Origin: Oopsacas minuta
Lineage: Eukaryota > Animalia > Porifera
NCBI GenBank assembly: GCA_024704765.1
Contig: JAKMXF010000233.1
Location: 1-64,000, forward strand
Reading direction: 5' to 3'
Length of the DNA stretch: 64,000 nucleotides
Below are positions 13,902 through 55,800 of the stretch, in pieces. The notes under the pieces were generated by a model, which saw nothing but the letters and a program-made list of their open reading frames with translations, was not told the DNA's origin and did no database searches. Each line of letters starts with the position of its first letter. Positions within the stretch are counted from its first letter, which is position 1. Made by a program: the position numbers and the translations under genes.

Positions 13902-14136
13902 CCGTAAACTGGGGCTACTTTGGCCGCTGAGTTTGCTTTAGCCCAAATATTGAAAATTTCTTACGTATCGAATAGATATTGTATTTGTATTCGAAATTGT
14001 CTATCGATATTTGAAAATTCGTTAAAAATTTGCTAAGTCATTTTCAAGTATAACACTGAATCTAATCTAGTTTCTTTGAAACTTTGATATTTGGGCTAAA
14101 GCAAACCCAGTGAGCCAAAGTAGCCCCAGACTACGG
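13902..14136. mobile_element. MITE with about 60-bp TIRs and TA TSD (Tc1/mariner-pogo type)
   Basis: Left CCGTAAACTGGGGCTACTTTGGC...TTTGCTTTAGCCCAAATAT and right ATATTTGGGCTAAAGCAAA...GCCAAAGTAGCCCCAGACTACGG. TA at 13900-13901 and 14137-14138. Confidence 0.88.
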
Positions 14137-14897
14137 TATCTATATTAATACAGTATGCTAGTTTGCCAACTACCAGTAGCGCATGCGGCAGGTACTATTA
14201 AATATATGGTATATGGAGGTGAATTTTGATTGCGTCATTGTGGTTAGAATTACTGACTTATCATGCTCAAATGTGTTCTAGATCTATCAGCCGTATGTGA
14301 TAACCTAATAATAGTTGAATTCATGACGATTTGTGAAATTCTTCATGATCATTTTGAATATTATTAATGGCCTGAAAATAATTTTAGCATTGGGTGTATT
14401 TTGGTCAATATTTGGTTTGTTGCTCAGGACCTTTCTTGGATTAGTGCCCAGTCTTCGTCGCTTCGAGGAGATTTTGTCTGATGCCAGACTACCTCCTGAT
14501 TGTCTGATTGTGTGTTTTAGAGTTTGGTCTGGTGGTTGATATGGATATTTCTCTATTTGTTCATTATCAAGCTTTTCTGGTACTGATACTCTTGTTTTCA
14601 TATTGACTCTGCAATAACTCTTCTTCCATCAATTCTTTACTAATTTGATAAACTGCAACCATGGTGGCACAAAAATTATATGACCAATTTTCCAGAGGGA
14701 CCAACGTTTTCATAACACCCCTACCAATCCTGTCAATTGGCATCATATGGCTCTACCAATTACACCCCGAGTTTACGCCTCTGATAAACACTTGTACATT
14801 TTGATAACTCTTTTTTCTTTAGTATCATATTAGCTACGTAGTACATAAACAAGTGCATATTACTATACAAACCTAAGTGTGTAATTGGGCGTGTACA

Positions 14898-17800
14898 ATG
14901 TCTGAACAGATGGATGCAGTCCAGTCTTACGTAGCTAGCAGCACTCAACTGCTCTCAGCGCCCCAAACTTCTGGGGCACTCACTCACACTTCTAATTCTA
15001 TTCCTACATATCCCCATTCTCACAATAGCAACTACATTCAGTATCCTGTACAGAATTCTTATCATCAATACTATACTCCACAATATACACAGAAACAACA
15101 ACAGCAAGATCAACAACCTGGTTACTATGTTTACCAACAGAACAACTGGAATGAGTACGCAAAAGCTACGGCACCTCCCCCTCCCCCTCCTGGGGTGCCT
15201 GCTACTCCTCTTCCTCCACCTTGTACCTATCATGGCCCATATAATACTCTACAGTACCCTCCTGTGTCACAGACAGGTACGCAGGGACAGATAGGAGCTG
15301 CTGGAGTATTGCCCTCTCAATTACAGGCTCAGGAGCCCTCAGCTAACCTGAATCAGGTAACTTTATTAAATATATATATTTGTATTACGTATGTCTGTAT
15401 ATGAGTCTGAATCCTTTGTGGGAAGTCAGAGTCAGGATTTCTTGCCCAAACTACCTCAGTATATTATTAGGTGTGCGTACCTATAGTAAGTATCTCATTT
15501 GTTTCGTAGACAGTACTGTTAGCATGGGAAGAAACCGCGTACGAATGAACCATCAATGGAGAAACATAATTGGACCATGGATCATGAAGTATTTTCGTAT
15601 TATGACTTGCATGCTTTGAGGTAAATTAAGACCAAGAAATGAGAATATTATAAAAAGATATCCACGAGTGTTCGGCCCAATTATAATATCCTGGATTCTG
15701 TTCAAAATATGATTCTCTACAATCTGGGTCAAGTGAGGCCAAACTTTACGGTCAGCTATCAATTATTTTTGGCTAATGTTTCATTTGGAGGGTGCTTTAT
15801 CTTCCCATCATTAGCCTCGCTACTGACGTTGCGAGGCTAATTTCTTTTACGGTTTTCGTGCACTTTTGAATAAAACTCATTATTCTGTATAAAATCATTT
15901 AGACAATTATATCTGATCACCAGTGGCTGTCTCAGGGGGGGCAAACGGGACATTTGCCCCGGATTCGGAAATCATGCCCGTGTCTGCCAGATCCTCTGAC
16001 CAGCACTGCCAATTATACGTATAATAAGAATTTACCCCTGTTTACCCCGAGTATGTAAATCCTGAGACCACTCCTCCAGTCTCCTTTCAATATCTCCCTA
16101 CCTCTTCTCATTTTCCCTTAACCTTATTTATTTCCTTCTCATCTTCCTTCCACTCTCCTTGGTACCGATCCTATAAGTATCTCCCGTTGAGGTCGGGAAG
16201 AGGGGTAATAATTGTTACCGCCATAAATGATCATTTCTAAGTCTCACTGGTTTATATATTTATATTTCTGATTATTTGTTCATTACTCTTCTCTAGGGCT
16301 ACTCTAATACTCTCTACCCCACATATGATCCCAGCTATCAACACGTCCCTACACCGCCTCAACCTTTCTATCCCTCATACCCTCAACAAAACTACCCTCC
16401 CTACTTCCCTCCACCCTCTCTTCCCTCTCAGCCACCATTCTACCCTACACATTCCTTTCAACCACCTGGTTACTACGCAGCTGTTCCCCCACCCTCTGCT
16501 CAAATGACACATCACGCTCCACCTCCAGATGTGAGAGGTCCACTTGAAAATGAGAGTGTTTCTGCTCCTACGTTTCCTACTGGTGTAGATAAGCAGGAAA
16601 GATACGGGGGAGTACAAGGAGTGGATAATAGGGTAATGTCTAGAAGAGGTCAGGAGGAGAGAGGGGAGTATGGAAGGAAAGGACATGGTATTGAGAGAGG
16701 GAAGAAATCTCTTAGAGAGAGTAGGTGAGTTTTATTTTTACCATCTACTACAGTATACTCGCCAATACGATATAATCTTTGGAAAATAGTCTAAATGTTT
16801 CTAATCCCATTTTGCCCATTTCTCTTACTGATAATACACGACATACGTAACTAGCCTTTTTACTGAGCATATTTTCCTGGACCATGGATTACATAATTCA
16901 AGTCTATTTATTTTCAGTTACATATTTATTATTCTCGATTATCTAAAATTTATACCTTTCTGCTTGAATATATTTATTATGTATTATGGATGTAAATGTC
17001 ATCCATAAATATCAAATTTTGGTAATTAACAAATGTAACTTTATTGAGTTATTCTAGATACTACTTTTGCCAATATCCACTTATAACTCAATGATTGCTA
17101 GATTTATGGTTCAATATGTCCAGCCAGTATGTACCACATACCCAACTTCCCATATCCTTGTAACACATGAATATATCAATATTGAACCGCTGTCCTATGG
17201 TATTGTTTCTATGTTATTCAATAATACGAATAATTTGACTGATTAGAGCTGTCCTTATTAACTGTCTTTCATTAAAACTCGAATATACATTTCATTATAA
17301 TTCGAAATTCTATTACTTTCAATTTCAATTTCAAAATACCAAAGTCAACCACGTGTTTAACAACTATACATTTCAAATTTAGTCCTATCTCTACTTCTCA
17401 CACTTCTCACTCAAAGAATCCTAAACACTTATCTAGCTCTGACACATCAGGTAGACATGAAGATGCTTCAGATAATCTCCCTGAATCAGCTCAGATGTAC
17501 ATTAAGAGAGTATTCCAATCTTGTAGCAATGAGAAGGATAAGGATCGGATGCAAGAGAAGCTGAAGGATAAACTAGACAGGATTATGACTGCAGGAATAC
17601 AGTGGGAGATTGACTGGGATAGAGAGTCTATACCTACCATAGATTCTATTAAGAGCAATAAATCAGAAACGAAGGGTTAGTTATTATTCTCCTATTCGTT
17701 ATTCTTTAGTGTACAGTACACGTAAACTCCCGTTATAACCGACTCGAATATAAAGAATCTCCCGCAGTAAGGAAGTGATTCTTTACCATCTATAGCTATA

Positions 17801-19713
17801 TCTTGAAAGTAATTGACTGCTTACATACAACTGTTTTAACATGAGATGCACAAAGATACTGTGACCTCCTAATTAATAGTATTAAAGGCCAGAGTTGTGA
17901 TTTGATTTGGATTTGAATGAAATATCAATCAAATCCACAACTCGTTAAAGGCAGAAGTTTCTAACAAACTTTTGCCAGAAAATAGAATTGTATTATATAA
18001 TTTGAATCTGTTTTATCGGACAATTTCAAAAGTGCCAATAGAGTTCAGGTATTATGTTATATTCAGTTTTTACCGAAGCTCCTATTAATAATCTAAAGGG
18101 ACTTTGAGGAGATGTCCAAATAGCAAAGATGGTGTGCGATGTCTGTCCATGCATTCATGCGAAATCTATAACTAAGCTATATTTCTTAAATTCTCTGAGA
18201 TAAGCCCAACAGCGCAAAGTATTATTCTTGTGACAATAATCTTGGTTTCTAAATTTTTACATATTGTTCTGGTTACTCGGGTGTCCTGGGACCTTATTCA
18301 CTAACAGAACGTACTTAATTGTGTTCCTAATGCCGCACTTCCAATATACGTAGTTACTCATTAGAATAATGTATATTATTCAAATATTATACACTATTAT
18401 CCAACAGTCGAATACAGATTTTAAAACTTCATATTTTTTGTTATCTGATCTTATGTTATATATTATATTTTCTTTTAGTCCGTAAATCTCGTTGGGATGT
18501 GGATTCTTCTCCTGATAAGCCCAGCAGTCCCCCTACTCCTCCTTCCCCTCCCTCTCCTGCCGCACCTCCTCACACCCTACCTCCCAGCATTAAGAGCCGT
18601 CTCGGAGCAAAGCCCATGCAGATTGACTCTATCAATACAGACTACAGTGATAGTGGTAACAGAGGATATCAATTAGATAGCATTAAAGGTAACTCTACTA
18701 CTAGTCGTATTGTAACATCTGTTGTAGCCACTAAGAAGAAAAAGAAGAAGAAAAACAAAGGAGGTGCCGGACTCAAATCAGGTGGTGTGCCTCAACAAAG
18801 TAGCATCACACCCCTGGACGACCTTACCCCACAGGATCGGGACAGGATTCAGAGGAGAGCCGAGAGATTTGGATCCAAACAACTCGATACTAAAAGTTTC
18901 CCTAAAATTACTCTAAACACTCTGTTAAGTAACAATGATATACTACACTTTGATTCTGATAGGATTGTTGGTACTTCTAGTGACCTGGAGAAACCGTACC
19001 TCCGTCTGACGTCAGCACCTGACCCTATTGATTTCCGTCCATTAGACGTTCTGTATAAATCTTTAGAATATGTTTTAGACAAATGGAGGGATACTGGTGA
19101 CTACTCTTACACTTGTGAACAGCTCAAATCTATCAGACAAGATTTGACTGTACAGGGTATCAGTAATGAGTTTACAGTTCATGTGTATGAAACACACGGT
19201 CGTATAGCTCTAGAGAAACGAGATCACGAAGAGTTTAATCAGTGTAACTCTATGCTTATGGAGCTATACGAATCGTGGGACGGCAATATAGCCGAGTTTA
19301 CTGCATACAGGTTATTCTATGGAATGTTAGTGAGAGATTATGTTGACATCGACCAATGTCTAGCCACTATTCCGCCTGATATACGTGAAGTACCTGAAGT
19401 AATACATGCTATAAAGATATACACTGCATGGGTGATACATGACTATTCTGCATTCTTCAAGCTGTACATAGCAACGCCTAATATGGGTGGGTACCTAATT
19501 GATATGTTTGTACAGCGAGAGCGATTGAGTGCATTGAAAATCATTTCCAAAGCGTATAGGCCTACCGTCTCAGTAGATTTCATCACACGCATGTTAGCGT
19601 TCCAAGATAGGGAGGAGTGCATCAACTTTTTGATCAGTGTAAGTGCAGTGCTGACAGCAAAAAAAGATCAATTAGATTGCAAGCTGTCTTTGTCTGATCT
19701 TACAATGCCATAG
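14898..19713 (+). CDS. LENG8: LENG8/THP3 homolog (SAC3/GANP-PCI domain), 4 exons, about 786 aa
   Basis: Exons 14898-15356, 16297-16724, 17437-17675 and 18479-19713 have GT-AG ends and compatible phases (0, 2, 1), totalling 2361 nt. Motifs: P/Y/Q-rich N-terminus, YIKRVFQSC...IDWDRE, RKSRWD, LEKPYLRLTSAPDP, YTCEQLKSIRQDLTVQ, YETHGRIALE. Confidence 0.93.
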
Positions 19714-21349: not shown

Positions 21350-22090
21350 ATGGCTTGTTTTCGTGCACAATTTGAAGGCAACAATGAAGTTGGAGTATTC
21401 TCAAAGCTAACTAATAGTTATTGCTTAACTGCAATAGGTCAATCTGAGAACTTTTACAGTTTATTCGAGTCGGAGCTTGGAGATAGTATCCCTGTCGTAC
21501 ACGCCAGTATCGCTAGCTGTAGTATAATCGGGCGTCTGTGTGTGGGCAACAAACACGGACTCCTAGTGCCAATTACCTGTAGCGATCCTGAATTACAACA
21601 TCTGAGGAACTCACTACCTGATTCAGTGAAAGTACAAAGAGTTGATGAAAAGCTATCCGCCCTGGGTAACGTTATATGTTGTAATGATTATCTAGCGCTC
21701 GCACATCCTGACCTCGATAAAGAGACAGAAGAAATTGTTAAAGACACCCTCAAGGTGGAAGTGTTCAGACAGACAATAGCTGGACACCCGCTGGTCGGCT
21801 CCTACTGTCAGTTCAACAATAAAGGCGGATTAGTCCACTCTAAGACGAATAAACTGGCACTCAATGAACTCTCATCTCTGTTGCAGGTCCCACTCGTCGC
21901 GGGTACAGTCAATAGAGGCAGTGATATCATCGGCGGGGGTCTGGCAGTTAACGATTGGTCAGCTTTTTGTGGGCTGACTACTACAGCTCCTGAATTATCT
22001 GTAATTGAAGGAGTGTTTAAGTTAAATGTACACCCAGTTCCCATTATGGGAGCTAAAATGCGTGCAACTATAGTAGACTCTATCTCGTAG
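21350..22090 (+). CDS. EIF6: Eukaryotic translation initiation factor 6, intronless, 246 aa
   Basis: [46 protein letters not shown] and [16 protein letters not shown]. Confidence 0.98.
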
Positions 22091-26309: not shown

Positions 26310-27446
26310 ATGTCAGATGAAATTCCGCTTTTGGTGATTGATAATGCTTCTGGTATGATAAAGGCTGGATATGGTGGAGACGATAATCCTTACGCTGTCT
26401 TTCCTAATATCGTGGGTCATCCGCGTCATTCAGGGGTCATGGTAGGGATGAGTCAGCAAACTTATTGTGTAGGAGACGGGTATTCATACAGACGTGGAGT
26501 TCTTAAGTTTACTTCCCCCATTGATAAAGGTGTTGTTACAAACTGGGATGATATGGAGCATATCTGGCATCACACGTTCTATAACGAACTACGTATGGCA
26601 CCAGAAGAGTGTGGAGTTCTACTCACAGAACAACCTCTTAATCCTAAAGCTAACAAAGAGAAAATGGCTCAGATTATGTTTGAGTCATTCAACATTCCTT
26701 TACTTTACTTGTCAACTTGTCCTGTGCTATCTCTCTATGCTTCTGGTCGTACAACTGGACTCGTTATTGAATCGGGAGCAGAAGTAACTCATATCGTGCC
26801 AATATTCCACCAGCATCAAATCTCTTCTACTAACCACCATGTAGATTTTGCTGGAGCACAATTGACTGATTACTTGCAGAAGTTATTTTGTGAGCGTGGG
26901 TACTCATTCTGTACAACAGCTGAACACGAAATAGTACGTGATATTAAAGAGAAATTGTGTTATGTAGCTATAAACCATGATCAAGAGACACATAAATGTA
27001 ATTCAAGTTCTGAATTAGAGAAGAATTATGAGTTACCTGATGGTAACATTATAACTTTAGGTTATGAGAGATTCCAGTGTACTGAAGCTATATTCTGTCC
27101 TTCTCTGATAGAAAATAGCTCAGAAGGATTACATAAACTAGTCCATGACTCTATCATAATGTGTGACAATGAAATACGACCGTTTCTCTACTCTAATGTT
27201 GTCCTTTCTGGAGGGAACACTATGTTTCCTGGATTTAGAGAGCGTATTCAAAAGGAATTGTCCCACTTAAACAGCACAGCTCCAGCTGCGACTATTAAAG
27301 TAATTTCTCCTCCTAATAGAAAGTACAGTGCTTGGATAGGAGGATCTATGCTAGCGTCTCTCTCATACTTTGAACAAATGTGTTTCAATAAGCAAGAATA
27401 TGATGAATATGGACCCTACATTATGCATAGAAAGTTCATATTGTAA
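26310..27446 (+). CDS. Divergent actin paralog, intronless, 378 aa
   Basis: Colinear with actin ([69 protein letters not shown]) but with many substitutions. Confidence 0.95.
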
Positions 27447-28014
27447 TTCTTTGTAGTTTTTGCATAAAATATTGTAAATAGAGATAAAAACATCCGTCTA
27501 TATGTTCGTTCTTGCACCGTACGAAATCTTGCAGTCCAATTCAAATGAAAATTGGTACACATATAAATTTTGGGTCGGAGATTGTACTTCGGATATGAAA
27601 TATTTATGTTGTGATTTTTTCACACCTTATATGTAAAATTCAAAAATTTGTTAGTTCGCCTTCAGTATCAGATCCTGAATTCATTAGTTTATACTTAATG
27701 ACAAAATATTGAATATATATTTATCAAAATAATCCGTTTATTATCTATCATGAATGGAAACCGCCTATAAAATCGGATCTTGCAAGATTTTTCCTTCCTA
27801 ATAGGCGGCTTTTGCTATTAGACGAATTGCTAATTGGCGGTTTCCACTATACTATTTTGTTCCTTCTAACTAAAGCGCTAGTTTACTTATAACATACACT
27901 AGAAAAGGAAATATAGAAGTATAAATGAAGCGCAGATAATTGGTTAAATACTAATCTTTGTAACTGATCTTGTTGGTGGTTAACTGGTTGTACAGTTGAT
28001 TATATTCTTCTTCG

Positions 28015-31049: not shown

Positions 31050-31548
31050 ACTGCCTACTGAACTTCATGTTTATCCTCACAACCTATGGATAAAATTGTG
31101 GATGATTATCCTACAATTACCCCTTATATAACTTTAAAACGAGATCTTTAGCATCAATTTGGAATATGTACAAAAAGGTGTGAAAATATAATTAATCATT
31201 TAATAAAGCATGTAGATTTAGATTTGAAAGTGCGAAATTGAAATCTACAAGTTCATACTCGATTACCTCTGAATAGCAGTTAAAAACCTCGAAATTTCTA
31301 GCACCATTTTGAAATATTAACAAAATTGTGTGAAAATATGATTAATTATATGATAAATCTGTGAATTTGTAACTTTCAGAATGTGTAAAAATATGAATAA
31401 TCACCAAAAAGGTGTGAAATATTCAATTCATACTCGAGGTGCAAATCTCCGACCCAAAATGTATATGTGAATCGGACTGCTAGATTTCGCACGGCCGCAC
31501 ATTGTCCATGCAATTAGGGCATCTCCCTATAGGAGCTGCACTAAAAAA
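31050..31548 (-). mobile_element. Copy of a dispersed Helentron/HINE-like non-autonomous family
   Basis: Shared 5' motif TTAGTGCAGCTCCTATAGGGAGATG...ATGGAC(A/G)ATGTGCG and internal ATATGATTAATCATATTTTCACACC. Other copies at about 18130, 27500-27640, 35065-35830, 36400, 39924-40260, 48880-48960, 50350-50440 and 51330-51620. The superfamily assignment is inferred. Confidence 0.65.
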
Positions 31549-31798
31549 CTTTCCTAGACTCGAACAATGTCAGAACAAAATAGAATCTACAAAAAATTAA
31601 CTATAAATAATTACAAATCTAATAAAGTAATAAATACAAATCAAAACTAACATCAGATTAATATTGAAATTCCTAGGAAGAAATAGAATAAATTAGAAAG
31701 TACGTAGTTACGTAATATAAATAATATTCAAAGAACCTAGTGCTGCCTACAAAAGTAATGTCTATTTCGAAACTAAGAATTGCTATGAATAAGGCCGG

Positions 31799-33130
31799 TT
31801 AGGGTTCGGCTAAAAATCCCATTATCGAGTCATCAAAAGCATGTAGCCAATCTGTATGATGGGGCGTACCACGAGTACCTGTTATTACAGAGGTGAAAGA
31901 TTTATCGCGATAAGTCAAAATATTCTCTTTTCGGTGATGCTCCCATACTTTCAATTGCTGGTTTACTTGATCAATGTTGAACTTCGGACAGTCAACAAGT
32001 TTGAATATATCTTTCATGTAATCAGTATGGTAATCGATTTGCTCACTCGGGCTAGATAATTTGTCCGCCTTAAGTCTGAATGTATCGATTTCCTTTTGAA
32101 TATCCCTCTCTGACGGTAGGCAAAAAGTACCCAAAATGACATCACGCACAAACCAAGCTTGAGTGTCAAATAATGTAATTGTGTAATATTGGTTTTGCAT
32201 GCCCAGATAGAAGAGTTTATGGTTTTTCTTCCATACCACGCCTTTATATAGATCGGGACAACAATCTGTGTTCTCAGTTTTCAATCTTAGATTTTCCTCT
32301 AAGAATGGGAAATGGCGCAAGTAACCTGTGCATAAGATTATACTATCTACTTTCTGACTATTTCCATCTTTGAAATAGGCCATATTACCTTCTAGCCGAT
32401 CTAGGGACATTTCTTTCACAGTTGAAGGCCATTTGAATCCAATAGGATTCTGTCGATATACGATGGTTATTGACTTAGCACCATATTTGTAACATTGAAT
32501 GGCGATATCTTCTGCTGAATAGCTACTACCTATAACAATCAAGTCTTGTCCAGAAAATTGTTCTGCATTCCGAAAATCATGCGAATGGATAATACGTCCA
32601 GGAAAAGTGTCCATGCCAGGATATTCCGGCACGTAAGGGAAAGACAAATGTCCTGAGGCAACCACAACAAAATCAAACTCTTCTGTTGAGAATGAATCAT
32701 TGATTTTGTCCCAAGTAGTGACACTGAAGGTGTTATTATCAAAGGTTACATTCACAACTTTTATGTTGAATTTGATGTATTTCTTCAAATCAGCCTTCAC
32801 AGCACGGGTAATTATGTAATCACGCATTACTGGTCGAGGTGTGTATGAAGGAATAGCTCTGCCAAAATGTTCATCAAAAGTATAATCTCCAAATTCAAAA
32901 CATTCCTTTGGCGAATTTGACCACATATGTCTGTACATACTGTTAGGTACGCTGTCGCCATATTGATCACTACCCGTTCGCCAAGTCAAATTCCACATTC
33001 CGCCCCAATCCTCCTGTTTTTCATAACATAAAATTTCAGGAATAAGCTTTTGCTGTAATTCAGCTTGTTGAAATGATCTCAAAATTGAAAGGCCGCAGGG
33101 TCCGGCCCCAATAACGAGTACTCTTGGCAT
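31799..33130 (-). CDS. Bacterial-type flavin-containing monooxygenase (Tmm/mFMO-like), intronless, 443 aa
   Basis: FAD motif GAGPCG, EKQEDWGGMWNLTWRTG, SMYRHMWSNSPKEC, FMO fingerprint FPGRIIHSHDF, NADPH motif GSSYSAEDI, CYKYGAK and C-terminal HHTDWLHAFDDS. No animal-FMO C-terminal membrane anchor. Confidence 0.95.
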   Translation of the reverse strand: MPRVLVIGAGPCGLSILRSFQQAELQQKLIPEILCYEKQEDWGGMWNLTWRTGSDQYGDSVPNSMYRHMWSNSPKECFEFGDYTFDEHFGRAIPSYTPRPVMRDYIITRAVKADLKKYIKFNIKVVNVTFDNNTFSVTTWDKINDSFSTEEFDFVVVASGHLSFPYVPEYPGMDTFPGRIIHSHDFRNAEQFSGQDLIVIGSSYSAEDIAIQCYKYGAKSITIVYRQNPIGFKWPSTVKEMSLDRLEGNMAYFKDGNSQKVDSIILCTGYLRHFPFLEENLRLKTENTDCCPDLYKGVVWKKNHKLFYLGMQNQYYTITLFDTQAWFVRDVILGTFCLPSERDIQKEIDTFRLKADKLSSPSEQIDYHTDYMKDIFKLVDCPKFNIDQVNQQLKVWEHHRKENILTYRDKSFTSVITGTRGTPHHTDWLHAFDDSIMGFLAEP

Positions 33131-34398
33131 AAAATTCTAATACAATCAAAATAATGTGAAAATACGAAAAAATTTCAGATAAAATAAATAAGAAAAAATT
33201 GCAACTGTTGTTGTTTGTCTGTTTTCTTGTGCGTTGTCATAGAAAGAATTTATGGAATGCTATTTTTGATTCGAATTTTTCAATTCTGAGATGTCGCATA
33301 ACGATGTATATCAAATATGCTGAGCATGTATCAGGGAATATTGCAATTCTTTGCACAAATATATACAAATTTCGTAGAATTGTATCCCAGCTTTGTGCCA
33401 GAGCCATAGACACCGAATATTCTCAGAACAAATATGCCATTAGTCAACCAGAATTTTACTATGGTTTAGTGTCAGGATCATAGGCGCTGAACCCGGGGGA
33501 TGGGGCTCGAGCCCGCCCCCCCTCGCTTAGATACAGCCCCATAGAGCTGATACAATATATATATATATATGTGTGTGAGCCCATTGGAGCGTTCAAATTG
33601 TTTGAAAGTTTGGCGCCCCTGGTCAGGATTGCCCTTGGATGTTGCCACAATGTTTCACTACCTCCTGATTTTAGTTTTTGGCGGTGGCGATATCTATAAT
33701 CAAATTCAAAATTCCATAGGGACCCAAAATTCCCTGACAGCACGTGGTGTAGAGAATACGGCCGTCGCGCAGCGACCTAGCAAGTGAAGTGTGCTAGTGT
33801 TAGCAATCATAATTTGTCGTACAAAGCAAACGCCCCCAGGCCAGGGCTCTCAACTTTCACCACTCACGATTTTGTCTACGATAGGCTCGTGAGATTTTTC
33901 GCGAATTTCACAATTTTGAAAGTTACCAATTTGAGAGCCCAGCCAAATGGTTATTCACATGAGAAGTACATCACTACATGCCCCTAATCCTAAGGATTGC
34001 AAGTGGGAATAAAATATGATTACCATTGCCATCTCATTCCTACAGGATTCCCATATGGGAATCGCGTAAAAATTATATTTTCCGACAAGATTCCCCTGTA
34101 GAGGCTGTTGAGTCGATCTCTATGTAAAACAGTGACAGATCAACTCAACAGCTTTAATTGGTGCATCACTATAATTGTACCCTTACCTCAACAGTGCTGA
34201 TTCTCCTCTACCCTCAATGAGAGAACATTTCCATATTCAATTCTTCAACAGAATAACTCCTTTCTTCTTCTGCAATTACAATATTACTTGTGTATTACTG
34301 ATGTATCTCTTCTCTCTCTCCAATCCTCGCATCTCCCCACTATGGAGGTTCATTAGCCCACAGTTCACTTAGTTTCATGTTTGGAAATATAATCGGTG

Positions 34399-35062
34399 AA
34401 CTATAGTAATGCACACCTTGATGAAATGGGTTTTAATGAAGATGTGGTTATTGTAGTGTGGTAGAACTTAGAAAATAATGAAGATAGGTGAAAAAGAACG
34501 CAACAATCCGTCAAGAATTGAGAAAGTTATACTAATTTTCATTTATATTGAAAGAAGCGCATGAATAAGATGCATGCATCACGTACAAGGTTGGCTATGC
34601 TATGGAAGATATTTATTATTAGTACTATGTCGTGTACAGAACATCACACCACGGGGTAATGCTTTCTAATTGCTGCAATAATGTAGTTAAATATGTTCTT
34701 TTATGATATCTTTCAGGATAATGAAATATATACGCCTATTATATATTACTAATCACTTTGCAATTTGACATATATGAATATGTTAAAGTAGAAATATTTA
34801 TCTCATGGTATCCGGTGTGGATCATCTTATTATCATCATACCATAACGAAAGAATATGCACAATGTATAAGCATTCTGAAGTGTCAAAATTAGCATGGTT
34901 TTGGCTTCTTTCAATATAAATAAAAATTAGTCTAACTTTCTCAATTCTTGACTGATTGTTGCGTTCTTTTCACCTATCTTTATTATTTTTTAAGCTCTAC
35001 CACACTACAATAACCACATCTTCATAAAACCCATTTTCATTAAGGTGTGCATTACTATAGTT
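34399..35062. mobile_element. Foldback/MITE with about 158-bp inverted arms
   Basis: 34399-34556 (AACTATAGTAATGCACACCTT...TATATTGAAAGAAGC) is the reverse complement of 34908-35062, at roughly 90% identity by eye. Confidence 0.88.
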
Positions 35063-35064
35063 GT

Positions 35065-35830
35065 ACCCAGAGATTTGCACCTCGGGTATGAATTTTTTCT
35101 AAAGGAACATTTCACCTTTTGGTGATTAATCATATTTTCACACCTTTCGTAATATTTCAAAATGATGCTAGAGATTTCGTATCAACTGCAAGTCTGGAGT
35201 AACTGATTATGAGATTTCAAATTTCAATTTTTAAATCTATATCTACATGTTTAATCATATGATCAATCATATTTTCACACCTTTTTACATCTTATTCAAA
35301 AATCATGCTAGAGATTTGGTTTTCTGCTTGTCAGGGGTAATCGAGTATTGTGTATTTCTACAGTAGTCTCAATAACGGACACTGCGGATTAGATTTTGTC
35401 CTTTGTAGGTGGGTGTCTGTTTCTCAGAGATTGATTAAGTATTATTTACATGTATTATTAACTTAGTTCGTTCAACGAGCTTGTCCGTTGTAGAGGTGTT
35501 ATCCGATTTTCAGGAGTGTCCGTTTTGGGAGACTCCACTTTATATGAATAACCATATGATTAATCAGATTTCAAACTTTTTGCATATTATTCAAATTCAT
35601 GCTTTTTTTAAATTTGGTTTTAGCTGCTAATCAGAGGTAGTCGAGTATGTAGATTTCAAATTTCTATTCTCTATTTACATGATTTATCATATGATTAATC
35701 ATATTTCACGTCTTTTTACATATTATTCAAAATCATGCAATAGATTTCCTTTCAAAAGTACAGGGAGTAATTACAGGTTTATTATTCAGAATTTTATCCA
35801 TATGATTTGAGGATAAAATATGAAGTACAG
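35065..35830 (+). mobile_element. Long copy of the HINE-like family with about 4 internal tandem subrepeats and a nested TA-TSD MITE (35361-35540)
   Basis: The subrepeat core ATGATTAATCATATTT recurs at about 35125, 35255, 35560 and 35690. The nested element end GGGAGACTCCACT matches 62092-62150 inverted. Confidence 0.65.
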
Positions 35831-39737: not shown

Positions 39738-40776
39738 ACTACAAACTCACGAATACAACCTCAATTTGACCAGACATACATTGAGAAATTAAACTAGGGC
39801 ATATTATATATAGTAGTGATAAATGACAAGAATGTATACGTGTGGAAATAAGATACTTTTGTATTCTATTTCTCCTGTATATTCTTATTGTATGCTGCCT
39901 ACCTGTCTGGCATTGCAAAATACTTATTAGTGCAGCTCCTATAGGAAGATGTCCAAATGACATGGACGATGTGCGACGTCTGTCCGCTCGGCCTTGCGAA
40001 AACTATAAGTCCAATTAACATAAACATTTCGGGTCTGAGATTTACACCTCGGGTATGAATTTTTCACACCTTTTGGGTGATTAATCATATTTCCACACCT
40101 TTCTATATAAAATTCAAAGGGATGCTTGGTTTCAACATGTTGTCAGGTAATTGAGTGCGTAGTGTCCGATTTTGGGATTTTGTGAGCCTGAAAGTTACAA
40201 ATTCACAGATTTATCATATGAATAATCAGTTCACACCTTCAGACTGATACTTCAAATAATATTATTAATTTGGTTTTAATTAACTATTAATCACTGATGA
40301 TTTTGTTTCGTCACCCCTGCCTATTTGGTAGTGGCCAAGTTTGGTCATACGACCACAGGTTGAGAAACAATGTTTTTTAGCTCCCCTGGCCTCACCCCTG
40401 ACTGGTGCTTGACCCGACCTGTCAACCTGTCCATCTCTGTACTGTCCTTTATTTGTTCCTGGTTTTTTAGTATTTGTTTTAAAGCATACAGCGTTTCCAC
40501 GTTTCTGTCAAATTCTAAGATTGTGGAGGTTCATTCGTATGGAACTTGGGATTTGGTCTATTTATTATTCATTCCATTTAAGGTAGTTCCTCGTTACCAT
40601 GTGTCCCGTTTGTCGAGGTTCCATTGTATTATCCATTGTATTAACTACAATTATTTACACTCAATTTAGATATTATATTCTTACAAGTATGCTCTCTAAT
40701 CCCAATACTATTCATTTTATTAGCATTTATATAACTCATTTTACGGTATTTGTAAATATTACGTTTGAGTGGAGAG

Positions 40777-46800: not shown

Positions 46801-49800
46801 CTTGACTAATTCTGTACGAATTTTACACCTGATTGCAAAATGTAACTAATTAGGATAATCAAACTCTAAAGTTATTCTTGTATTTAAGTATTCTTAAATA
46901 TAATGAAAATGTTTAGGTAAAAATTGGCCACGATAAAATAAGCGCTAAGGTAATTATTCAGGCAATAAGTGTACGATACGTATACTATAGAGAATAGACC
47001 AGTGGTTCTCAACCGGTGTAACGCGGCACACTTTTGTGCATCAGACCATTGTTTGGTGTGCTAATGTTACTAACATGAAACAAATTTGTTGTAAATGGAT
47101 TCAAGGTTCTTACTTTCGGGTCTCTGGATATCAAAGTGCTAAATGTTAAGAATAACTAAACTTTAACGCCAATAATTACATATAAATGGTATAATACTAC
47201 GAGAATTTTACGCCCCTGTGTGTGGTACTATACTCAATTGAGCTATGGCAGTTGTGCCTTCAAATTAGATATGAAAATAGTGTACCGAAGTTTGAAATGG
47301 TTGAGGAGCACTGGTATAGACTATGTATGTACTAATAAATGTTTGAAATACTAATATTCATGTACTATCAAACTATTATGTAAAATCATATAATTACGTA
47401 ATAACATCCCTTACTAACAGCCCTTACTATTGCTTCTGTAATACATTAGGATATGGCTTTTCCATGAAAATATACTTTTCCTCTTTATAATAACACTTAT
47501 CTGTATAGAACGTCTTGTTATACCCGTATGTCTCTAAACTGACTCGATAACAACCTAGATATTGTCCGATACAAGTAAGAATACGAACCAAAAGTACGCC
47601 AAAGCCTCTACCACGATACTTCTCTTCCACTATCAACATCTCAATTCTCCCACGTGTGGTTGCTCTGTAAAATTTCTCATCCAGTATTAGAACTCCTGCT
47701 GCTACAACCTTACCACTAGTTTTATCCTCTATTACTACTATGTAGTAGACATTCTTTGCTGCTCTCATCCTATTGAATTGTTGCTTAAACTTGGTCCTGT
47801 CTAGGTCTCCGATAGGATTGAGTTCTGCTAGTAATTCCCCGAATGACTTGTCGAAGTCGTTATAATCTATAGGCCTGAGGATACAATTATGTTTGGATAA
47901 GTCTACAACTGGATCAGTGCTGTCTAGTAGTTCTGTAGCTTTATTGATTATTATTGGGTCAAATAGTGGAGTATAATGTTCTGTAACTGCCATCTGTTTG
48001 ATAATGAATGCTAGATCAGCTATCTCAAATTGTCATTAATTTTGAATACAGATTAAACTCTTATTCGTGATTCAAATCTGATACCGTATTTATGGACTCT
48101 CTCTCTCTCGTATATTGTTAACCGAATACTCCCTGGAAAATGTGTGATTTTATGACGTCAAAAAGGTGCTAAAATGTCGTTTTTGGTGTGGGAATAGGTT
48201 AAAACGAAGTTGCAAATTTTAGTGTTCCTTTTCATATGAACGTAAAACTTCAGCCATGATTGATTATTCTAAATTCATATTTTTCTTACATTTCTCATAG
48301 AATATAATACAGTGTGAACATCCTACACTTATAAAGCTCACAGCTCTAGTTCTACAGGTTTGTTCTGTTATGATTATTCAGTATTCATAGGCGCCACAGC
48401 CGCAGCGGCTGGGGCGGCCATGACACCCCAGTTTTTACAGAAATAATGTAGCTCAATGGAGAATAGAGAGTTGAGCCCCTTCACCTTAGATTACCCAAAT
48501 GACAATTGTACTTGTTAATATTTACTTCATTCATTCTAGGCACAACTAGGAGACTATACTACGTAAGGAATTACTTGATATTTGGAGATAATTCTCATAT
48601 ATACGTATATTAAGATTCTACTCAATCATTGACTCTTATCTCTCTTACAATGGCTAACGTAAATTTTCAATTATAGTTCCACATAGGTAAACTTGTCTGA
48701 ATATATTTTGTGTGTAAAAACTGCTAAACATATTTCATTAAGATATGATATACCCGATAAATTATCCGTTTAAGTGACATCTCTAGGATCATTTGAATTA
48801 TAACAAAGCTTTATGAATATTTTACATTACATGCTTATTTCGTATCAATATGACAACCAGATTTAGCTAGATCGCGCAATTGCGTCCGTGCGTATGAACG
48901 TATTACGTCGTGCATTATCTATGACAGTAGGACATCTCCCTTTACCAGCTACACTAAGATTTACGATTAATCTGTTTCATTTGTCAACACAAAGGTTATC
49001 CTCTTTAACTGAGTAAAGTTATTCCCAGATCTATATGTGCAAATAAATACAATTTCATAAAGAAGGATTAGATCAATTTACATCTTATGGGACACCATAC
49101 AGTTATGTATCATTCAGTGTTCAGTATTACGTCACTAAGAATGCCTCAGCTTTGAGTGTATTCTTGCCATATAACTTTTTCTCATATTGCAATAACTGTG
49201 TTCTGTTATCTCTCATGATAAACACTCGCCTCTTTGTTGTTACCATCTTCAATGCTTTATCAAGCTGTATCCCATCTCTATGCATAACATAAGCAATAGT
49301 AATTGTAGCCGAGCGATTCCTGCCAGCAGCACAGTGCACTAGAACACGAGCATCATCCTGTTTCATAATCTCATCCAGTTTCTCAAACGCTTGATCAAAC
49401 ACACGACTTATCCCTTCATCTTGTCCCATATCTCTAACCCTCAGGTTAATATACGTAAATTCATTAGGATGGTAGTTAGGTACATCATCTGCTACGTTCA
49501 TGATATGAGTTACTTTGTGTGCTTTTAGCTCTTTCAGATTATCTGCAGCATATCCGCCTCCGTAGTATAGTTTATTATCGTATATCTCTGCTGCATCCCA
49601 AAGCTGGGTGCTCCTCTTCTTCCTGAAAAAGTCTGAAATTGCTGAAGCCATATATCGTCTATATATTATAGATCTCTAGTACATACAGTTAAACTTGTCT
49701 ATAACACCCACCACCAGGGGAATGTCCAAAAGTATTCATGTACGTACAGGTGTGGTAGTAATTTGAAGTTATTGGCCCTTATATAGATGTAGTGGTCTAT

Positions 49801-52800
49801 ATATGAATGAAGTGGCCAGTTGGATAGCTGACTGATAAATAAATATGACTATATATAAAGATGCCAACTCTCACACCTTACCTGTGAGTCTCACGCTTTT
49901 TCAGAGGTTAAAAATGAAATCTCACGCCATTTTATGATTCTTAACCGTACATTTTGGTGCTGAAATGCTAAATCTCATGCCTTTTGAGTTCTGAAGAGAA
50001 ATCTCATGGCTTGGCGAGACGCCAGAGCCAGCACGCCCAAGAGTCATATTAATCTTCCATGGCTAAATTACGTAAATTTCAAATTATAGTTCCTTCACTA
50101 TTAAACGTAAAATCTTAAACAAAACTCCTGTCTTCGCTAAATAAGTTTAAACTGAAAATCTGATTAAGATTAAGAATCTACATACCTGATGATGAGTTAA
50201 CATAAATATCCGTTGGAATGAGATCTATAGAATCATTTTCGAAAGACATAGCACAAATGGTTTATGAAAAGTTTCCTTACAAAAACTCAGATCCCTCATC
50301 TCCAATTTGAATGTACCTTTATTCCAATTTTTATTCCAATCTATAGTTTCGCAGGACCCCGAGGTAAGCGAACGTTGAAACAGAAGTCGCGTATTATCCC
50401 TGCCTGTGTAGGGCATCTCCCTTTACAAGCAGACTTAGATTTACGATTATTCGGGTTCGTTTCTTAAGGCAAAGGTCGTCCTCTTAACTGAGCAAAGTTA
50501 TACACATATCTGATATTAACACAGATTTATAACGATACATCTTTTGGTTTGGTGTTAAGTTACTTAGAATGCTTCCATTTCTAATGTATTCTTCCCATAC
50601 AACTTTCTCTCAAATTCTAATAACTGTCTTCCGTTATCTTTCATGATAGACACTCTCCTCTTCTTGTTAACGATCTTAAATGCTTTATCAAGTTGTATAC
50701 CATCTCTATGCATAACTTACGCAATAGAATTGTAGCCGAGCGATTCAGCCCAACAGCACAGTGCACTAGAACACGAGCATCATCCTGTTTCATAATCTTA
50801 TCCAGTTTCTCAAACGCTTGATCAAACACACGACTTATCCCTTCATCTTGTTCCATGTCTCTCACCTTCAGGTTAATATACGTAAATTCATTAGGATGGT
50901 GGTTAGGTACATCATTTGCTACGTTCATGATATGAGCTACTTTGTGTGCTTTTAGCTTTTTCAGATTATCTGTAGCTATTGCGCCTCCAAAATATAGTTC
51001 ATTATCATATATCTCTGCTCCATTCCATGGCTGTATATTACTCTTACTGAAAAAGCCTGATAATGCTGAAGCCATTATATCTACATATCCATACGTGGTG
51101 TATGAACTATTTCTTTGAGGATATTGTATAGTTAACAGATATCTCCTGCTATTGGAAATATAATATACTTAGAATCACATATTAACAATTTCTGTTATCA
51201 TATTAAATATCTACCAGTTTAATTTATGAGAAGCAATTATTTGTTAGGGTGTGCTTATTTCGGACGTTTATCTGTATTAACTAAATAGAACGTGTTTATG
51301 AGATTTGTGACTTGTTTGTGAACTTGTAATTATTTAGTGCAGATCATATTGGGACATTCTCTAATGACTTGGACGATGTGCGACGTTTGTACGTCCGTCC
51401 ACGCGACAGTCTGAAATCTATCAGTCAGATTATCGCGAAATTAGTATACATTTAAACATTTTGGGATAGAGATTTTTACCTAATGTATGAGATTTCCTAA
51501 TTGAATTTTCACACCTTTTTCTGTACGTGGAGTTGATTTTGGGATATCAGAGCATGAAATTTATAATTACACAGATTTATCATATGATTAATCATATTTT
51601 GGCGCACCTTTTCTCCTAAATTTCCAAAGCAAGATATGTATGTGACCCTCGTTTTAATACTCATACCAATGTTCCCCAACCTGGAGCCACGGTAAAAAGT
51701 TTGAAAGACTGACTCAGACAGGAACGATATTATTAATAATTGATATTAGCCGAGTATTGCAATTACAAATTATTAATTACATTTTCCAAGTAAATTTGGA
51801 TTTTATTGCAATTTTGTTGAAATTAATTACTCATTTGTACTACTCCATATATGGGTTGTAGAAACTATCTAATGACACTAATCGTATTATGAACATTAAC
51901 ACTAAGAACAATAAAATCCTGGTTTTCGATTACATAGTCAATGAAAGGGGTAGATAAAGTAGGGAGGCTAATCCTGTTGTTAGTTAGATAACGTAACTAC
52001 ACTAAGAATAGGATAGTTAACATCAACACGAGAGTAGAAATAGCGAGGGAGAACACAGGTGCACCTCCTGTAGCAGTTGTGATAACAATCTCACTCGAAG
52101 TAACACATCTACCAGCACTTCCATGTTGTTGGATTAATCCACCAGATACAGTACCCCAAGCTAGAAGCACGTAGTATCCTGCACCTCTATTCAGATTAGG
52201 GCTACCTAAGACATTAGTAGTGAAGGTACAGTTTATGATAGAAGCATCGTTGATGGAGTTTATTAGGGTTAGATCAGATGTGACTTCTGGAGGTCTAGCT
52301 CTAGCAGAGGCAAATCTTTCTAGAACAACGACATCCACACCAGAACGTACACACATGAATATGAATGAATTTGGCATACTTCGGGTAGTGGAAAGTCCCA
52401 TGGCGATCCAATCTGCTACAGGATTATCATACTGTAACTGGAATTGTACAGTGGTATTATCTATTGTATAGATGGTGCCGATATTAGGGGTTGTTGGAGC
52501 TGTGTTTACAGCACAATTCGAAAACTGGATGCATGTAGCCATAGTACCACATCTTTCACCGATGAGAAGATTAGACGGTTGGGTAGTAGCTGATGGGTTA
52601 GTAGCTGATGGAGTAGTAGCTGATGGAGTAGTAGCAGATGGAGTAGTAGCCGTTGGGGTAGTCGGATCAATTCCTGTAGCAGTTGTAATAACAATCTCAT
52701 TCGAAGAAACACATCTACTAGCACCTCCATGTTGTTGGATTGATCCACCAGATACAGTACCCCAAGCTAGAAGGACGTAGTATCCTGCACCTCTATTCAG

Positions 52801-55800
52801 ATTAGGGCTACCTAAGATATTTGTATTGAAGGTACAATTTATGATAGAAGCATCGTTGATGGAGTTTATTAGGGTTAGATCAGATGTGACTTCGGGAGGT
52901 CTAGCTCTAGCAGAGGCAAATCTTTCTTGAAGATTGACATTGGCACCAGAACGTACACACATGAATATGTTTGAATTTGGCATACTTTGGGTAGTTGAAA
53001 GTCCCATGGCGATCCAATCTGCTGCAGCATTGTCATACTGTAACTGGAATTGTACAGTGGTATCGTCTATGGTTGTGAAAGTACCGATGTTTGGGGTTGT
53101 AGGAGCTGTGTTTACAGCACAATTAGAAAACTGAATGCATGTTGTATCATCATCACATCCTACACCAATAAGGTCATTTGCATGGATAACTCCGAGACAA
53201 CTTAATAGTAAAATTAAAATGAGTATTTTAGACATTTTCAGTTCACCTCTGTTATGTATACAGTTGAAAACAAAAATATTTTTATTATTCTTGTATTTAT
53301 AGTAGTATTAGACCACCCACTTAGTGTCTGTTAACTTATCAAATATCAATCAAGAAGAGTCTTAATACAAAATCAGACTCCGATAATATTCGATATATCC
53401 GTATTCGATATGACGGGAGTTGACTGTATTGATTAGAGATATTAAACAGTATGTGTTAACCCACGGCTATATCAGTGGTTTATCCAGGAATTTCTGCCCG
53501 GTACTTTTGTCCTTTATAGCTGCTGAACTGACACTTTTAGGTGCCATTTAACAACCTAGTCCTAGATTAACCTCTGGGCTCTATTAATTTATTAAGCAGA
53601 GCTTACCGTTTAACATTCAGTCTCCTTCATTGTGAATTCGTCCCGTTTCCTATGAGAAACGGGACGAATTCTTATCTATGATTGACTTAATTAAAGCCTA
53701 ACTTAATTTAATACAACAGCTATGAGAATTATTATATCAGAACGCGTCTCATTTATGAGATCGATTATACAGTTAGTAATGCTATGTGCAAGCAGTGGCG
53801 TAACTAGGCGCTTGGTGGCCCCTGGCCAAATACAATTTTGAGTCCCCTCCCATTTCCTAGACAATTGCTTTCTAAGCATCAAACCTCAACTTAAAATATT
53901 AATCATAATTTTAGTAATACTAATCCCTGGACTTCTTCTTTTCCCGCTTCGCATATCCTGATTCAAAAGTACGTTTCATATCGAGATGAAATTAAACTAA
54001 TAAAAGAACGAAACACACTATAATATACGTATATATTGAATAGCCATGGTAAAACTGGGATTAGCGAAGTGCTTGATTTATACAACTAATTCTCGCTGTA
54101 CATTCTTATAATTGATAATATTTTTTAACTCTTCTCAGGAACTCTCGGAGGCCCCTGGACTATGTCCACCCTTGTCCTATAGTAGTTACGCCCCTGTGTG
54201 TAGGCTTATTATTTTAGTATAGACTTACAAAGTATTTCAAGTAACATAATCAATTCATATTGGCTTATTTCTCCAAAATTCATCGGAATTCCACCTATTT
54301 GTTGAAAATGTTTATTAATAGCTCTATTTTGTATTAAGTTCTATGAGAATTTATGTCTCTAATTCCCATAGAACCTAATACAAAATTTGGTCTATAAATA
54401 GACCGTCTATGAATAATCTAGCACTTTTATATATTACGTACGACATAAGAAGTTGCTTATGATTCTCTAAGCAGCAGCCTAATCCCAATAGGTCACTGTA
54501 GAGCACATAGCAACTATGTTACTGGGTGGAATATCCTGTATCGTATATTTATAAGCTAACTGAAAAATGTAATTTTGTATCGTTGAGAGACTTCATTACT
54601 CAGAATTTAATTCTATTTTACAGTAAACTCTCGTTATAACGAAGTGCTCGAGACCTCAGTTTCATTTCGTTAAAAGCGGAACTTCGTTGTGAGCTGAGTA
54701 AAATCAATTATTTTCAAGCTATAGCGGTTATGAATCACTTCGTTATAACCGACTTGTATGTAATGGGAGTTTACTATACTTTAAATCTGCAATGCTAACT
54801 ATATTATAATTATTTCTAAATGTAGAGAACATATAGCTATTGAAGAAGCTCTCAAAGAGATTAAATATATATCAAATTCTCTCATCAGCACTGAAGCAAA
54901 TGAAGATTGGTGAGTAACGATACGCTTACTAATTAGCCTTACATCACCTTGAAACCAAAGTCCACTATACATGAAACAAATACGTACATGCGAAAACAAT
55001 GTGTATGCAACAGAAGAACTTTGTTGTATACAATGTGGCCCAGGGTTGCCGTGGGAATTCTCATGGGAATTGGAATCAAAGGGAGGGGGGAGGGCAACCA
55101 GGACATATGCCCTAGGCGTCGCTTCGTAGGGAGCGCAATAAAGGCTTCGGGTTACTTACCATGATATGGCTCACAAGAATCATTGAGCTACCCTGGGCGA
55201 ATAGATGGGAAACTAATTCACGCGACTGCTTGTATGACTTAGCATATTTAAATTTTAAAACATTAATTAAGGGAGTTTGTTAATTGATTAAAATATTTAG
55301 AATTATTAGATATTCTTGATTTAGCGAAGAAGAAATACTTACACACTACAAACTGCTGATTGGTATGCAGAAGAATGATGCTATATCAACGTAAGGATAT
55401 ATATATATATATATATATAATACAGATGAGCTCAGCTCCTGGTGAATGAACCTACCAATATGTATTTACAATTATATCCACCTTATAGATATTTAGAACT
55501 GGTACAAGAATTACCTTCTTATGGAATGCAGTTCTATAATGTTAAGGTAAGCTCTAATCTCATATACTTCAAATTTCAAATACATTTGGCACGTATTCAT
55601 TATCCACTTCGAATTCTGTAATTGCCCAGGGTTCTATAATTGTACGCTTCGAATCCCATTGCCCACTGGTAAGTTTTCTATTATTTAATTCTTGTAGGAT
55701 ACAAACGAGGTACCAAAATTAATTGGGATTGGATTATGTGGAATTACACAGTTTAGTATTGACAACAGAAATCGACCAGAACAGGTAACTTTACTCAGTA

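Follow-up and report, generated by a model that had tools for sequence, protein, structure and literature searches.

Trimethylamine N-oxide (TMAO) is the best-known pressure and osmotic protectant of deep-sea animals, and FMO3, a flavin-containing monooxygenase (FMO), is the usual animal route to it from trimethylamine (TMA). In bacteria, the gene of trimethylamine monooxygenase (Tmm), tmm, sits with those of a TMAO transporter and a TMAO demethylase. Solved structures of such enzymes include those of Pelagibacter sp. HTCC7211 (Tmm7211), which belongs to SAR11, the most abundant marine bacterium, and those of Methylophaga, Roseovarius and Myroides. To our knowledge, the biosynthetic route to TMAO in invertebrates is poorly known, and well-supported bacterial genes in animals are still few outside rotifers, nematodes and arthropods. 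The stretch of DNA analysed here, referred to as the window, consists of positions 1 to 64,000 of contig JAKMXF010000233.1 (assembly GCA_024704765.1) of Oopsacas minuta, a glass sponge, a group that lives mostly in the deep sea. It carries a bacterial-type tmm gene (Table 1), which an earlier sequence-only reading had taken for a horizontal acquisition. That the sponge tmm was acquired from a bacterium by horizontal transfer is well supported by sequence comparison, and the gene is truly part of the sponge chromosome.

The product of this gene matches the Pfam FMO-like family (1.6e-44). It also matches from end to end the NCBIfam model NF058570, the trimethylamine monooxygenase equivalog of 443 positions, with residues 3-441 lying on model positions 1-442 (662.9 bits, E 2.7e-199); this collinearity confirms the intronless structure first noticed in the sequence. 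Among solved structures, the best phmmer match is Tmm7211 (7d4k, 616 bits, residues 1-440), followed at 484-559 bits by the thermostable mutant FMO 8b2d, Methylophaga mFMO (528-533 bits), Nitrincola FMO, Myroides Tmm and Roseovarius Tmm. For insect and plant FMOs the scores are 117-158 bits, for reconstructed ancestral mammalian FMOs about 102-116 bits. Foldseek identities are 56% to 7d4k, 50% to mFMO (2vq7/2xve), 48-50% to other Tmm structures and 18-23% to mammalian FMOs; the AlphaFold2 model, built from a 14-row alignment, is mediocre (mean predicted local distance difference test, pLDDT, 72) and serves only for identities and the overall fold. The assignment to the Tmm/mFMO type rather than to microsomal FMO1-5, made earlier from motif blocks, is supported by both scores and identities, and the earlier estimate that about half the residues match mFMO is correct.

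All of these motif blocks, namely WGGMWNLTWRTG, SMYRHMWSNSPKEC, DYTFDEHFG, GSSYSAEDI, CYKYGAK and HHTDWLHAFDDS, are found in the protein. The three signatures of the family are also in place, with the FAD motif GAGPCG at residues 8-13 (GxGxxG), the FMO motif FPGRIIHSHDF at residues 176-186 (FxGxxxHxxxF/Y) and the NADPH motif GSSYSA at residues 201-206 (GxSxxA). Of 18 residues listed as cofactor contacts in Tmm7211 (PMC8498191), 15 are identical. That the protein is a Tmm-type enzyme is well supported by these comparisons. The public gene model (P0001, 399 amino acids) begins at Met45 and does not contain the FAD-binding GAGPCG motif, while the full open reading frame (ORF) from Met1 aligns with the N-termini of all bacterial and sponge relatives. 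The public model looks N-terminally truncated, and its start should be moved to position 33130, adding 44 codons.

Related proteins were collected by word searches over 5.8 billion proteins, from which the best 120 matches were listed. Besides its own gene model, the closest to the window protein among these matches are five proteins of 441-444 amino acids with 63-66% identity; beyond these five, the matches listed are at most 61% identical and come from marine bacterial contigs. All five are encoded on long ENA metagenome-assembly contigs of 35-39% GC, each by an intronless ORF, in the company of long-terminal-repeat (LTR) and hAT transposons and of THAP, NHL, torsin, kinase, actin, eIF6 and glycosyltransferase genes. 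From gene order and similarity, we infer that these contigs belong to glass sponges. Orthologs in relatives are thereby found, partly at the same locus, so the earlier proposal of an acquisition by "the animal" stands as to the acquired gene but not as to a private event.

The bacterial side of the comparison is dominated by one group. In a scan of one genome per bacterial species, 78 of the best 80 loci are in Pelagibacteraceae or related single-cell alphaproteobacterial genomes (55-59% identity); a Hyphomicrobium and an Acidiferrobacterales genome account for the rest. An exhaustive search of 50%-identity representatives gives a single tight Tmm cluster, whose representative is 52% identical (537 bits), all further matches being at 45% or less. 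In a maximum-likelihood tree of 65 sequences (LG+C20+F+G4 by posterior mean site frequencies, PMSF; supports as ultrafast bootstrap/SH-aLRT, the Shimodaira-Hasegawa-like approximate likelihood-ratio test), the six sponge sequences form one clade (100/99), sister to SAR11-type Tmm (together 100/100). Acidiferrobacterales (95/79) and Streptomyces (94/81) branch off next, alongside another bacterial group. Because these neighbouring branches are bacterial, the direction of transfer was from bacterium to sponge, and the sister position points to a donor among marine bacteria with SAR11-type Tmm or in their stem lineage.

The best explanation as a whole, from a bacterial tmm donor through entry into the germ line and retention to a Tmm-type product, is one in which we place high confidence. 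The donor would have been a marine alphaproteobacterium with a SAR11-type Tmm, or its stem lineage, from which tmm would have reached the germ line of an animal ancestral to several glass sponges. Its codon usage would then have become that of the host, with purifying selection preserving the gene, whose site in O. minuta is at present between host repeats, near actin, an orphan gene, eIF6 and SAC3/GANP. The product is predicted to be a soluble, cytosolic FAD enzyme with neither signal peptide nor membrane anchor, because the protein starts at the Rossmann strand with GAGPCG and has no C-terminal extension of the kind found in microsomal FMOs. By analogy with Tmm and mFMO, and with the mechanism as given in PMC8498191, NADPH would reduce FAD and O2 would then give a C4a-hydroperoxyflavin, stabilized by Asn72 and bound NADP+; a small amine or sulfide would enter, NADP+ would shift and one oxygen would be passed to the soft nucleophile. 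The main reaction would be that of TMA to TMAO, and probably also that of dimethyl sulfide (DMS) to dimethyl sulfoxide (DMSO).

The best bacterial match lies in an operon of the usual kind, together with ABC transporter genes of the OpuAC type and a Tdm-like gene; among the window ORFs classified by Pfam, no TMA-producing or TMAO-using gene (transporter or demethylase) lies beside the sponge tmm. Since no demethylase adjoins it, TMAO would be an end product, accumulated or exported. Its likeliest use would be as a compatible solute against pressure and urea-like stress; alternatively, the enzyme could dispose of TMA and DMS freed from digested or resident microbes. A bacterial parallel exists in the deep-sea Myroides profundi, where Tmm-made TMAO raises pressure tolerance (PMC7997507). 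The gene probably lets the sponge make TMAO, by analogy with its bacterial counterparts, and a physiological role in TMAO supply or in TMA/DMS removal is plausible. What the comparisons establish is the identity, integration, phylogenetic origin and conservation of the gene; we infer its expression, activity, substrate and role.

It is possible, if somewhat unlikely, that an enzyme of the same origin does another job, mainly the detoxification or transformation of DMS, methimazole-like thiols, indoles and microbial or dietary alkaloid amines, rather than TMAO supply. Bacterial Tmm and mFMO oxidize DMS, indole and other amines besides TMA (PMC8498191; 2xvj and 5gsn), and plant alkaloids are detoxified by eukaryotic FMOs that belong to the same larger clade (5nmw; PMC10682829). 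The lack of a TMA-producing or TMAO-using gene nearby in the window fits this other job as well. Nothing speaks directly against it, but the flavin is surrounded by the residues of TMA-oxidizing enzymes, and TMA monooxygenase is the function for which the family model is an equivalog. A wider proposal concerning TMAO supply is unlikely as it stands, namely that glass sponges make pressure-protecting TMAO with an enzyme captured from the SAR11-like bacterioplankton that they eat, instead of or beside the invertebrate Tmm-like enzyme. The gene would then have been kept and multiplied for life at depth, and its faster change in O. minuta would reflect a weaker need in a cave-tolerant species.

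The state of the protein can be judged from its cofactor contacts, which were taken from Tmm7211 (PMC8498191) and mapped on the window protein. Contacts with FAD and NADP+ are identical at Gly10, Glu37, Trp46, Trp70, Asn72, Val125, Gly160, Ser163, Tyr170, Ser202, Ser203, Ser205 and Arg226, and also at Asn287, Gln314, Thr317 and Arg408 (Asn288, Gln315, Thr318 and Arg409 in Tmm7211). Two contacts are changed, Leu45 to Met and His227 to Gln, the latter at a site that is variable among Tmm. Estimates of the ratio of nonsynonymous to synonymous substitutions (dN/dS, Nei-Gojobori) are 0.06-0.30 among sponge tmm copies and 0.06-0.16 in pairwise comparisons of the window gene with its relatives. Synonymous sites are saturated in every pair that includes the window gene (proportion of synonymous differences, pS, 0.63-0.78), which fits an old split. 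These ratios indicate that the gene is maintained under purifying selection and, together with host-like codon usage, they point to an old transfer.

Several observations weigh against the explanation preferred here, and most of them concern the condition of the gene in this species. The score of the window protein is 12 bits under the curated NF058570 cut-off of 675 bits, an annotation rule set on bacteria, while four clade mates pass (P0002, 742; P0003, 713; P0004, 719; P0005, 678) and P0006 (663) is also below. Asn313 stands where Tmm7211 has Asp314 and Roseovarius Tmm Asp317; 97% of the other Tmm rows have Asp at this site. The proposed function of the Asp is to hold the NADP+ ribose and shut the substrate entrance, and in Tmm7211 the Asp314Ala change cuts kcat by half and increases the Km for NADPH, while Asp314Glu is tolerated (PMC8498191). 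The window protein has 29 departures from residues that are at least 90% kept in 30 other Tmm (7-22 in its clade mates), and its terminal branch is the longest in the sponge clade (0.42 against 0.11-0.18). As regards expression, the public runs, four of one sample and one of another organism, include none recorded as RNA, and no AATAAA or ATTAAA is present within 400 nt past the tmm stop. Several host genes also have no canonical hexamer, and scans for poly(A) signals and TATA boxes were uninformative. Contig L004 from Logan, of a relative, was considered as a transcript and rejected, as it shows 100% collinearity with genomic contig L003 and does not end in a poly(A) tail. On the side of origin, the related contigs are assigned to their taxon by gene order and similarity, the sponge clade lies as a sister group beside the sampled SAR11-type sequences and not within them, which bears on the exact donor, and an AT-driven amino-acid bias common to sponge and SAR11 proteins could draw them together.

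The observations on the gene itself could mean that a real and old transfer is now followed by drift towards loss, the gene being relaxed or unexpressed in O. minuta, for example because a shallow cold-cave life creates less need of a pressure protectant. The long branch and the many departures, the change of Asp to Asn at the entrance-closing residue, the score below the family cut-off, the 44 initial codons skipped by the public model and the lack of a public RNA run recorded for O. minuta can be cited in favour of such drift. It is nevertheless improbable, since the 443 codons remain open with no stop or frameshift, which is unexpected under neutral drift in a 35% GC genome, and the low dN/dS against relatives stands against it. 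Most of the 29 departures are conservative (L/M, F/L, D/E, K/R, W/F), the sponge copy P0005 also has Asn at the entrance site, P0006 has the same family score, and a second sample, 4-5% diverged, keeps the gene. We read this as a working enzyme for which constraint may be somewhat looser, or shifted, in this lineage.

The sequence-only reading had treated this enzyme type as foreign to animals, a premise that does not hold. The matches listed in a second word search, for which a nemertean protein was the query, show Tmm-like genes to be common among marine invertebrates. They occur in cnidarians (Exaiptasia, Desmophyllum, Oculina, Rhopilema, Sanderia), bivalves (four genera of pectinid scallops, and Sinanodonta), copepods (Tigriopus, Eurytemora, Acartia) and the nemertean Tubulanus, and many of the entries are named "trimethylamine monooxygenase-like" in RefSeq. 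These invertebrate proteins (P0322-P0375, P0162, P0173) are often present in several copies per genome and group largely by animal phylum. Because other animals have Tmm-like genes, the motif argument alone is insufficient, and the case for transfer rests on the tree, in which the glass-sponge genes fall outside the animal clade and inside bacteria, the invertebrate sequences forming a separate clade (97/97). A recent FMO phylogeny also describes a patchy distribution, with some invertebrate sequences in the bacterial-FMO clade, and leaves room for horizontal transfer (PMC10682829).

With such a broad animal clade in existence, vertical inheritance has to be considered, the sponge gene being in that case a poriferan member of the animal Tmm-like family and its grouping with SAR11 an artefact of AT composition or of long branches. 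The fraction of the residues F, Y, M, I, N and K (FYMINK) is indeed high in both sponge (0.315) and SAR11 proteins (0.342) compared with other bacteria (0.259), and the branch of the window protein is long. The animal-clade proteins, however, are themselves fairly AT-biased (0.296) and yet stay apart, and the short-branched sponge copies (0.11-0.18) take the same place as the window protein. Dayhoff-6 recoding leaves the placement of the sponges unchanged, keeping sponge with SAR11 (99/100, SH-aLRT/bootstrap), nested in bacteria, with Acidiferrobacterales next (99.8/100) and the animal clade outside all bacteria and sponges. Identities point the same way, at 57-61% to SAR11-type proteins against 48% to Tigriopus. 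Forcing sponges and other animals together costs 78.6 log-likelihood units and is rejected by the approximately unbiased (AU) test (p = 0.00077) under a site-heterogeneous model. The grouping with a broad, vertically inherited eukaryotic clade, named at the outset as what would refute the transfer, is thus the one rejected, and vertical inheritance is very improbable.

The age of the transfer is reflected in the order of genes around tmm in the related contigs. On the 398-kb contig L087, a homologue of the window ORF 7014-8195 (45%) is followed by tmm, a homologue of the orphan ORF (41%), eIF6 and SAC3/GANP. From tmm onward, order and relative orientation are those of the window, which has an extra actin between tmm and the orphan ORF. 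The homologue of ORF 7014-8195 sits on the opposite side of tmm in L087 compared with the window, which implies some rearrangement of the locus. In L006 the orphan-ORF homologue is beside tmm, and in L005 eIF6 is near it; the tmm copies of other relatives lie elsewhere, among Zwilch, ENTH, ribosomal-protein and SNF2 genes. An actin near tmm in L003 was considered as conserved gene order and rejected, being 34% identical to the window actin. The shared locus and gene order indicate an old transfer, and tmm already occupied this site before the split of lineages whose proteins are today 37% different in Tmm and 23% different in SAC3/GANP.

The gene has also multiplied in these relatives. The 90% clusters of the five proteins hold more full-length copies, sometimes several per contig, from which it follows that tmm is duplicated there. 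On L006, two extra fragments of the C-terminal half of tmm (14007-14609 and 14670-15163), inverted and about 8.5 kb from the intact copy, look like remnants of duplication. In the window, ORF 7014-8195 has a near-duplicate at 1407-2090, both encoding a multi-pass membrane protein; homologues of these ORFs (43-45%) are found a few kb upstream of tmm in L005 and L087, so that this orphan family travels with the locus.

In the window itself, tmm is embedded in host DNA. The other long ORFs are eukaryotic by Pfam (a MATE transporter, SAC3/GANP, eIF6, a divergent actin, a TRAF zinc finger, a GNAT acetyltransferase, dual-specificity phosphatases and a DOMON protein), and no bacterial gene adjoins tmm among them. 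Its GC content (0.387) and third-position GC (GC3, 0.354) fall within the range of 11 neighbouring host ORFs (GC3 0.27-0.40) and exceed those of SAR11 tmm genes (0.19-0.25). The codon log-likelihood ratio of host versus SAR11 is +0.089 per codon for tmm, +0.056 to +0.19 for host genes and -0.057 to -0.113 for SAR11 tmm. The host-like AT content and the surrounding repeat families, two of the features that had suggested real integration, are both borne out. The two repeats that flank tmm match each other as well as 39924-40228, 51555-51600 and 27558-27599, and their read depth rises to as much as about 250 times that of unique sequence. A pair of repeat segments, 31136-31449 and 35070-35348, about 76% alike and some 3.7 kb apart, is inverted around tmm, and the read contigs contain many "opposite strands" joints between the two copies. 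This arrangement may be a chance placement of a dispersed element.

Integration was verified with independent contigs from four public runs of one sample and from one run bearing another organism label and study. The contigs of all five runs cover intergenic DNA too, and thus behave as DNA. Those of the one sample span tmm and both flanks with zero differences (31521-33298, then 33273-34428), breaking only at repeats, and extend past the ORF by 168 nt on its upstream side and 278 nt on its downstream side, where the sequence is non-bacterial. Word depth over tmm equals that of unique flanks (238.7 against 213-352 in X2, 42.9 against 46-67 in X1). The second sample, from the other study, contains a tmm copy that differs at 39 positions over 960 nt and at 32 over 621 nt (95-96% identical), plus pieces of the flanks. 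Reads therefore link the gene to both its flanks, and the conclusion of real integration stands on eukaryotic neighbours, flank-equal depth, read contigs free of differences and the same gene order in a relative. Contamination or chimeric assembly, in which bacterial reads would have been joined to sponge DNA, is scarcely credible: microbes abound in the sponge, SAR11 probably serves as its food and the read contigs break at repeats on both sides of tmm, but gene and flanks have equal depth, the contigs enter non-bacterial flanks, codon usage is host-like with no bacterial gene adjoining, a relative shows the same gene order over a 398-kb contig, and the nearest bacterial protein among the matches listed is at most 61% identical.

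Table 1. Coordinates of tmm and of the neighbouring features in the window
Feature	Position	Strand	Remarks
tmm (bacterial-type trimethylamine monooxygenase, Tmm)	31799..33130	minus	Single ORF of 443 codons, ATG start, uninterrupted
First 44 codons of tmm	32999..33130	minus	Hold the FAD-binding Rossmann start; align with bacterial Tmm N-termini
Divergent intronless actin	26310..27446	plus	Pfam Actin, 406 bits; host neighbour 3' of tmm
Orphan host ORF, 377 amino acids	23653..24786	minus	Homologue adjoins tmm in relatives L087 and L006 (41-42% identity)
eIF6	21350..22090	plus	93% identical to eIF6 after tmm in L005 and L087; same relative orientation
SAC3/GANP-family gene	18499..19713	plus	77% identical to the gene after eIF6 in L087; conserved block ends here
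High-copy host repeat	31250..31700		Starts about 100 nt past the tmm stop; independent read contigs break here
Same repeat family, opposite orientation	34950..35500		About 1.8 kb upstream of the tmm start codon

Two further features of the window lie away from this locus. Tandem dual-specificity phosphatase ORFs are found at 49127-49651 and 50641-51075, of which the second is shorter and C-terminally diverged and may be a decaying duplicate. The ORF at 51997-53235 encodes a secreted-looking protein made of two near-identical DOMON/cytochrome-type halves, with a linker of Thr/Pro/Ser/Ala-rich repeats between them and a hydrophobic tail at the end.

In a literature search that paired Tmm, TMAO or monooxygenase with sponges, hexactinellids, invertebrates or horizontal transfer, no paper on this gene came up, and the O. 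minuta genome paper discusses neither gene transfer nor FMOs (the word "horizontal" is absent from it). The sponge tmm is a new, well-documented case of a known kind of event, the fixation of a bacterial metabolic gene in an animal lineage. The evidence is unusually complete, as it joins the conservation of gene order to data on read depth, codon usage and selection and to the rejection of an alternative tree. Bacteria of the donor type are also likely to be eaten by the sponge, in keeping with uptake of genes through feeding.

Among known systems, the Tmm of Pelagibacter HTCC7211 (7d4k) is the closest, with the same length and fold, 56% identity over the whole chain, a sister position in the tree and common FAD, FMO and NADPH motifs, as well as Trp70, Asn72, Tyr170, Ser202/203/205 and Arg226. 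It differs from the sponge gene in context, the latter being in an animal chromosome with host codon usage and no adjoining tmoX transporter or tdm demethylase, and in three residues, the sponge protein having Asn for Asp314, Gln for His227 and Met for Leu45. The Methylophaga sp. SK1 mFMO (2vq7/2xve), the Roseovarius RnTmm (5ipy) and the Myroides profundi Tmm (6kbw) share the same architecture at 48-50% identity, but stand farther away than SAR11 Tmm, on other branches of the bacteria; the Myroides enzyme offers the precedent for Tmm-made TMAO as a pressure protectant (PMC7997507).

Vertebrate microsomal FMO1-5 share with the sponge protein the chemistry of class B flavin monooxygenases, TMA being a substrate of FMO3, but have about 530 amino acids with a membrane-associated C-terminal part, whereas the sponge protein has 443 amino acids with no such part and only 18-23% identity. 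The Tmm-like genes of marine invertebrates are of the same family and length, animal-encoded and near the same NCBIfam cut-off (587-686 bits). They nevertheless form a separate clade (97/97), the Tigriopus protein being 48% identical, and their joining with the sponge genes is rejected by the AU test. Because many marine invertebrates have this separate Tmm-like clade, glass sponges and other invertebrates provide a natural comparison of two origins for one reaction.

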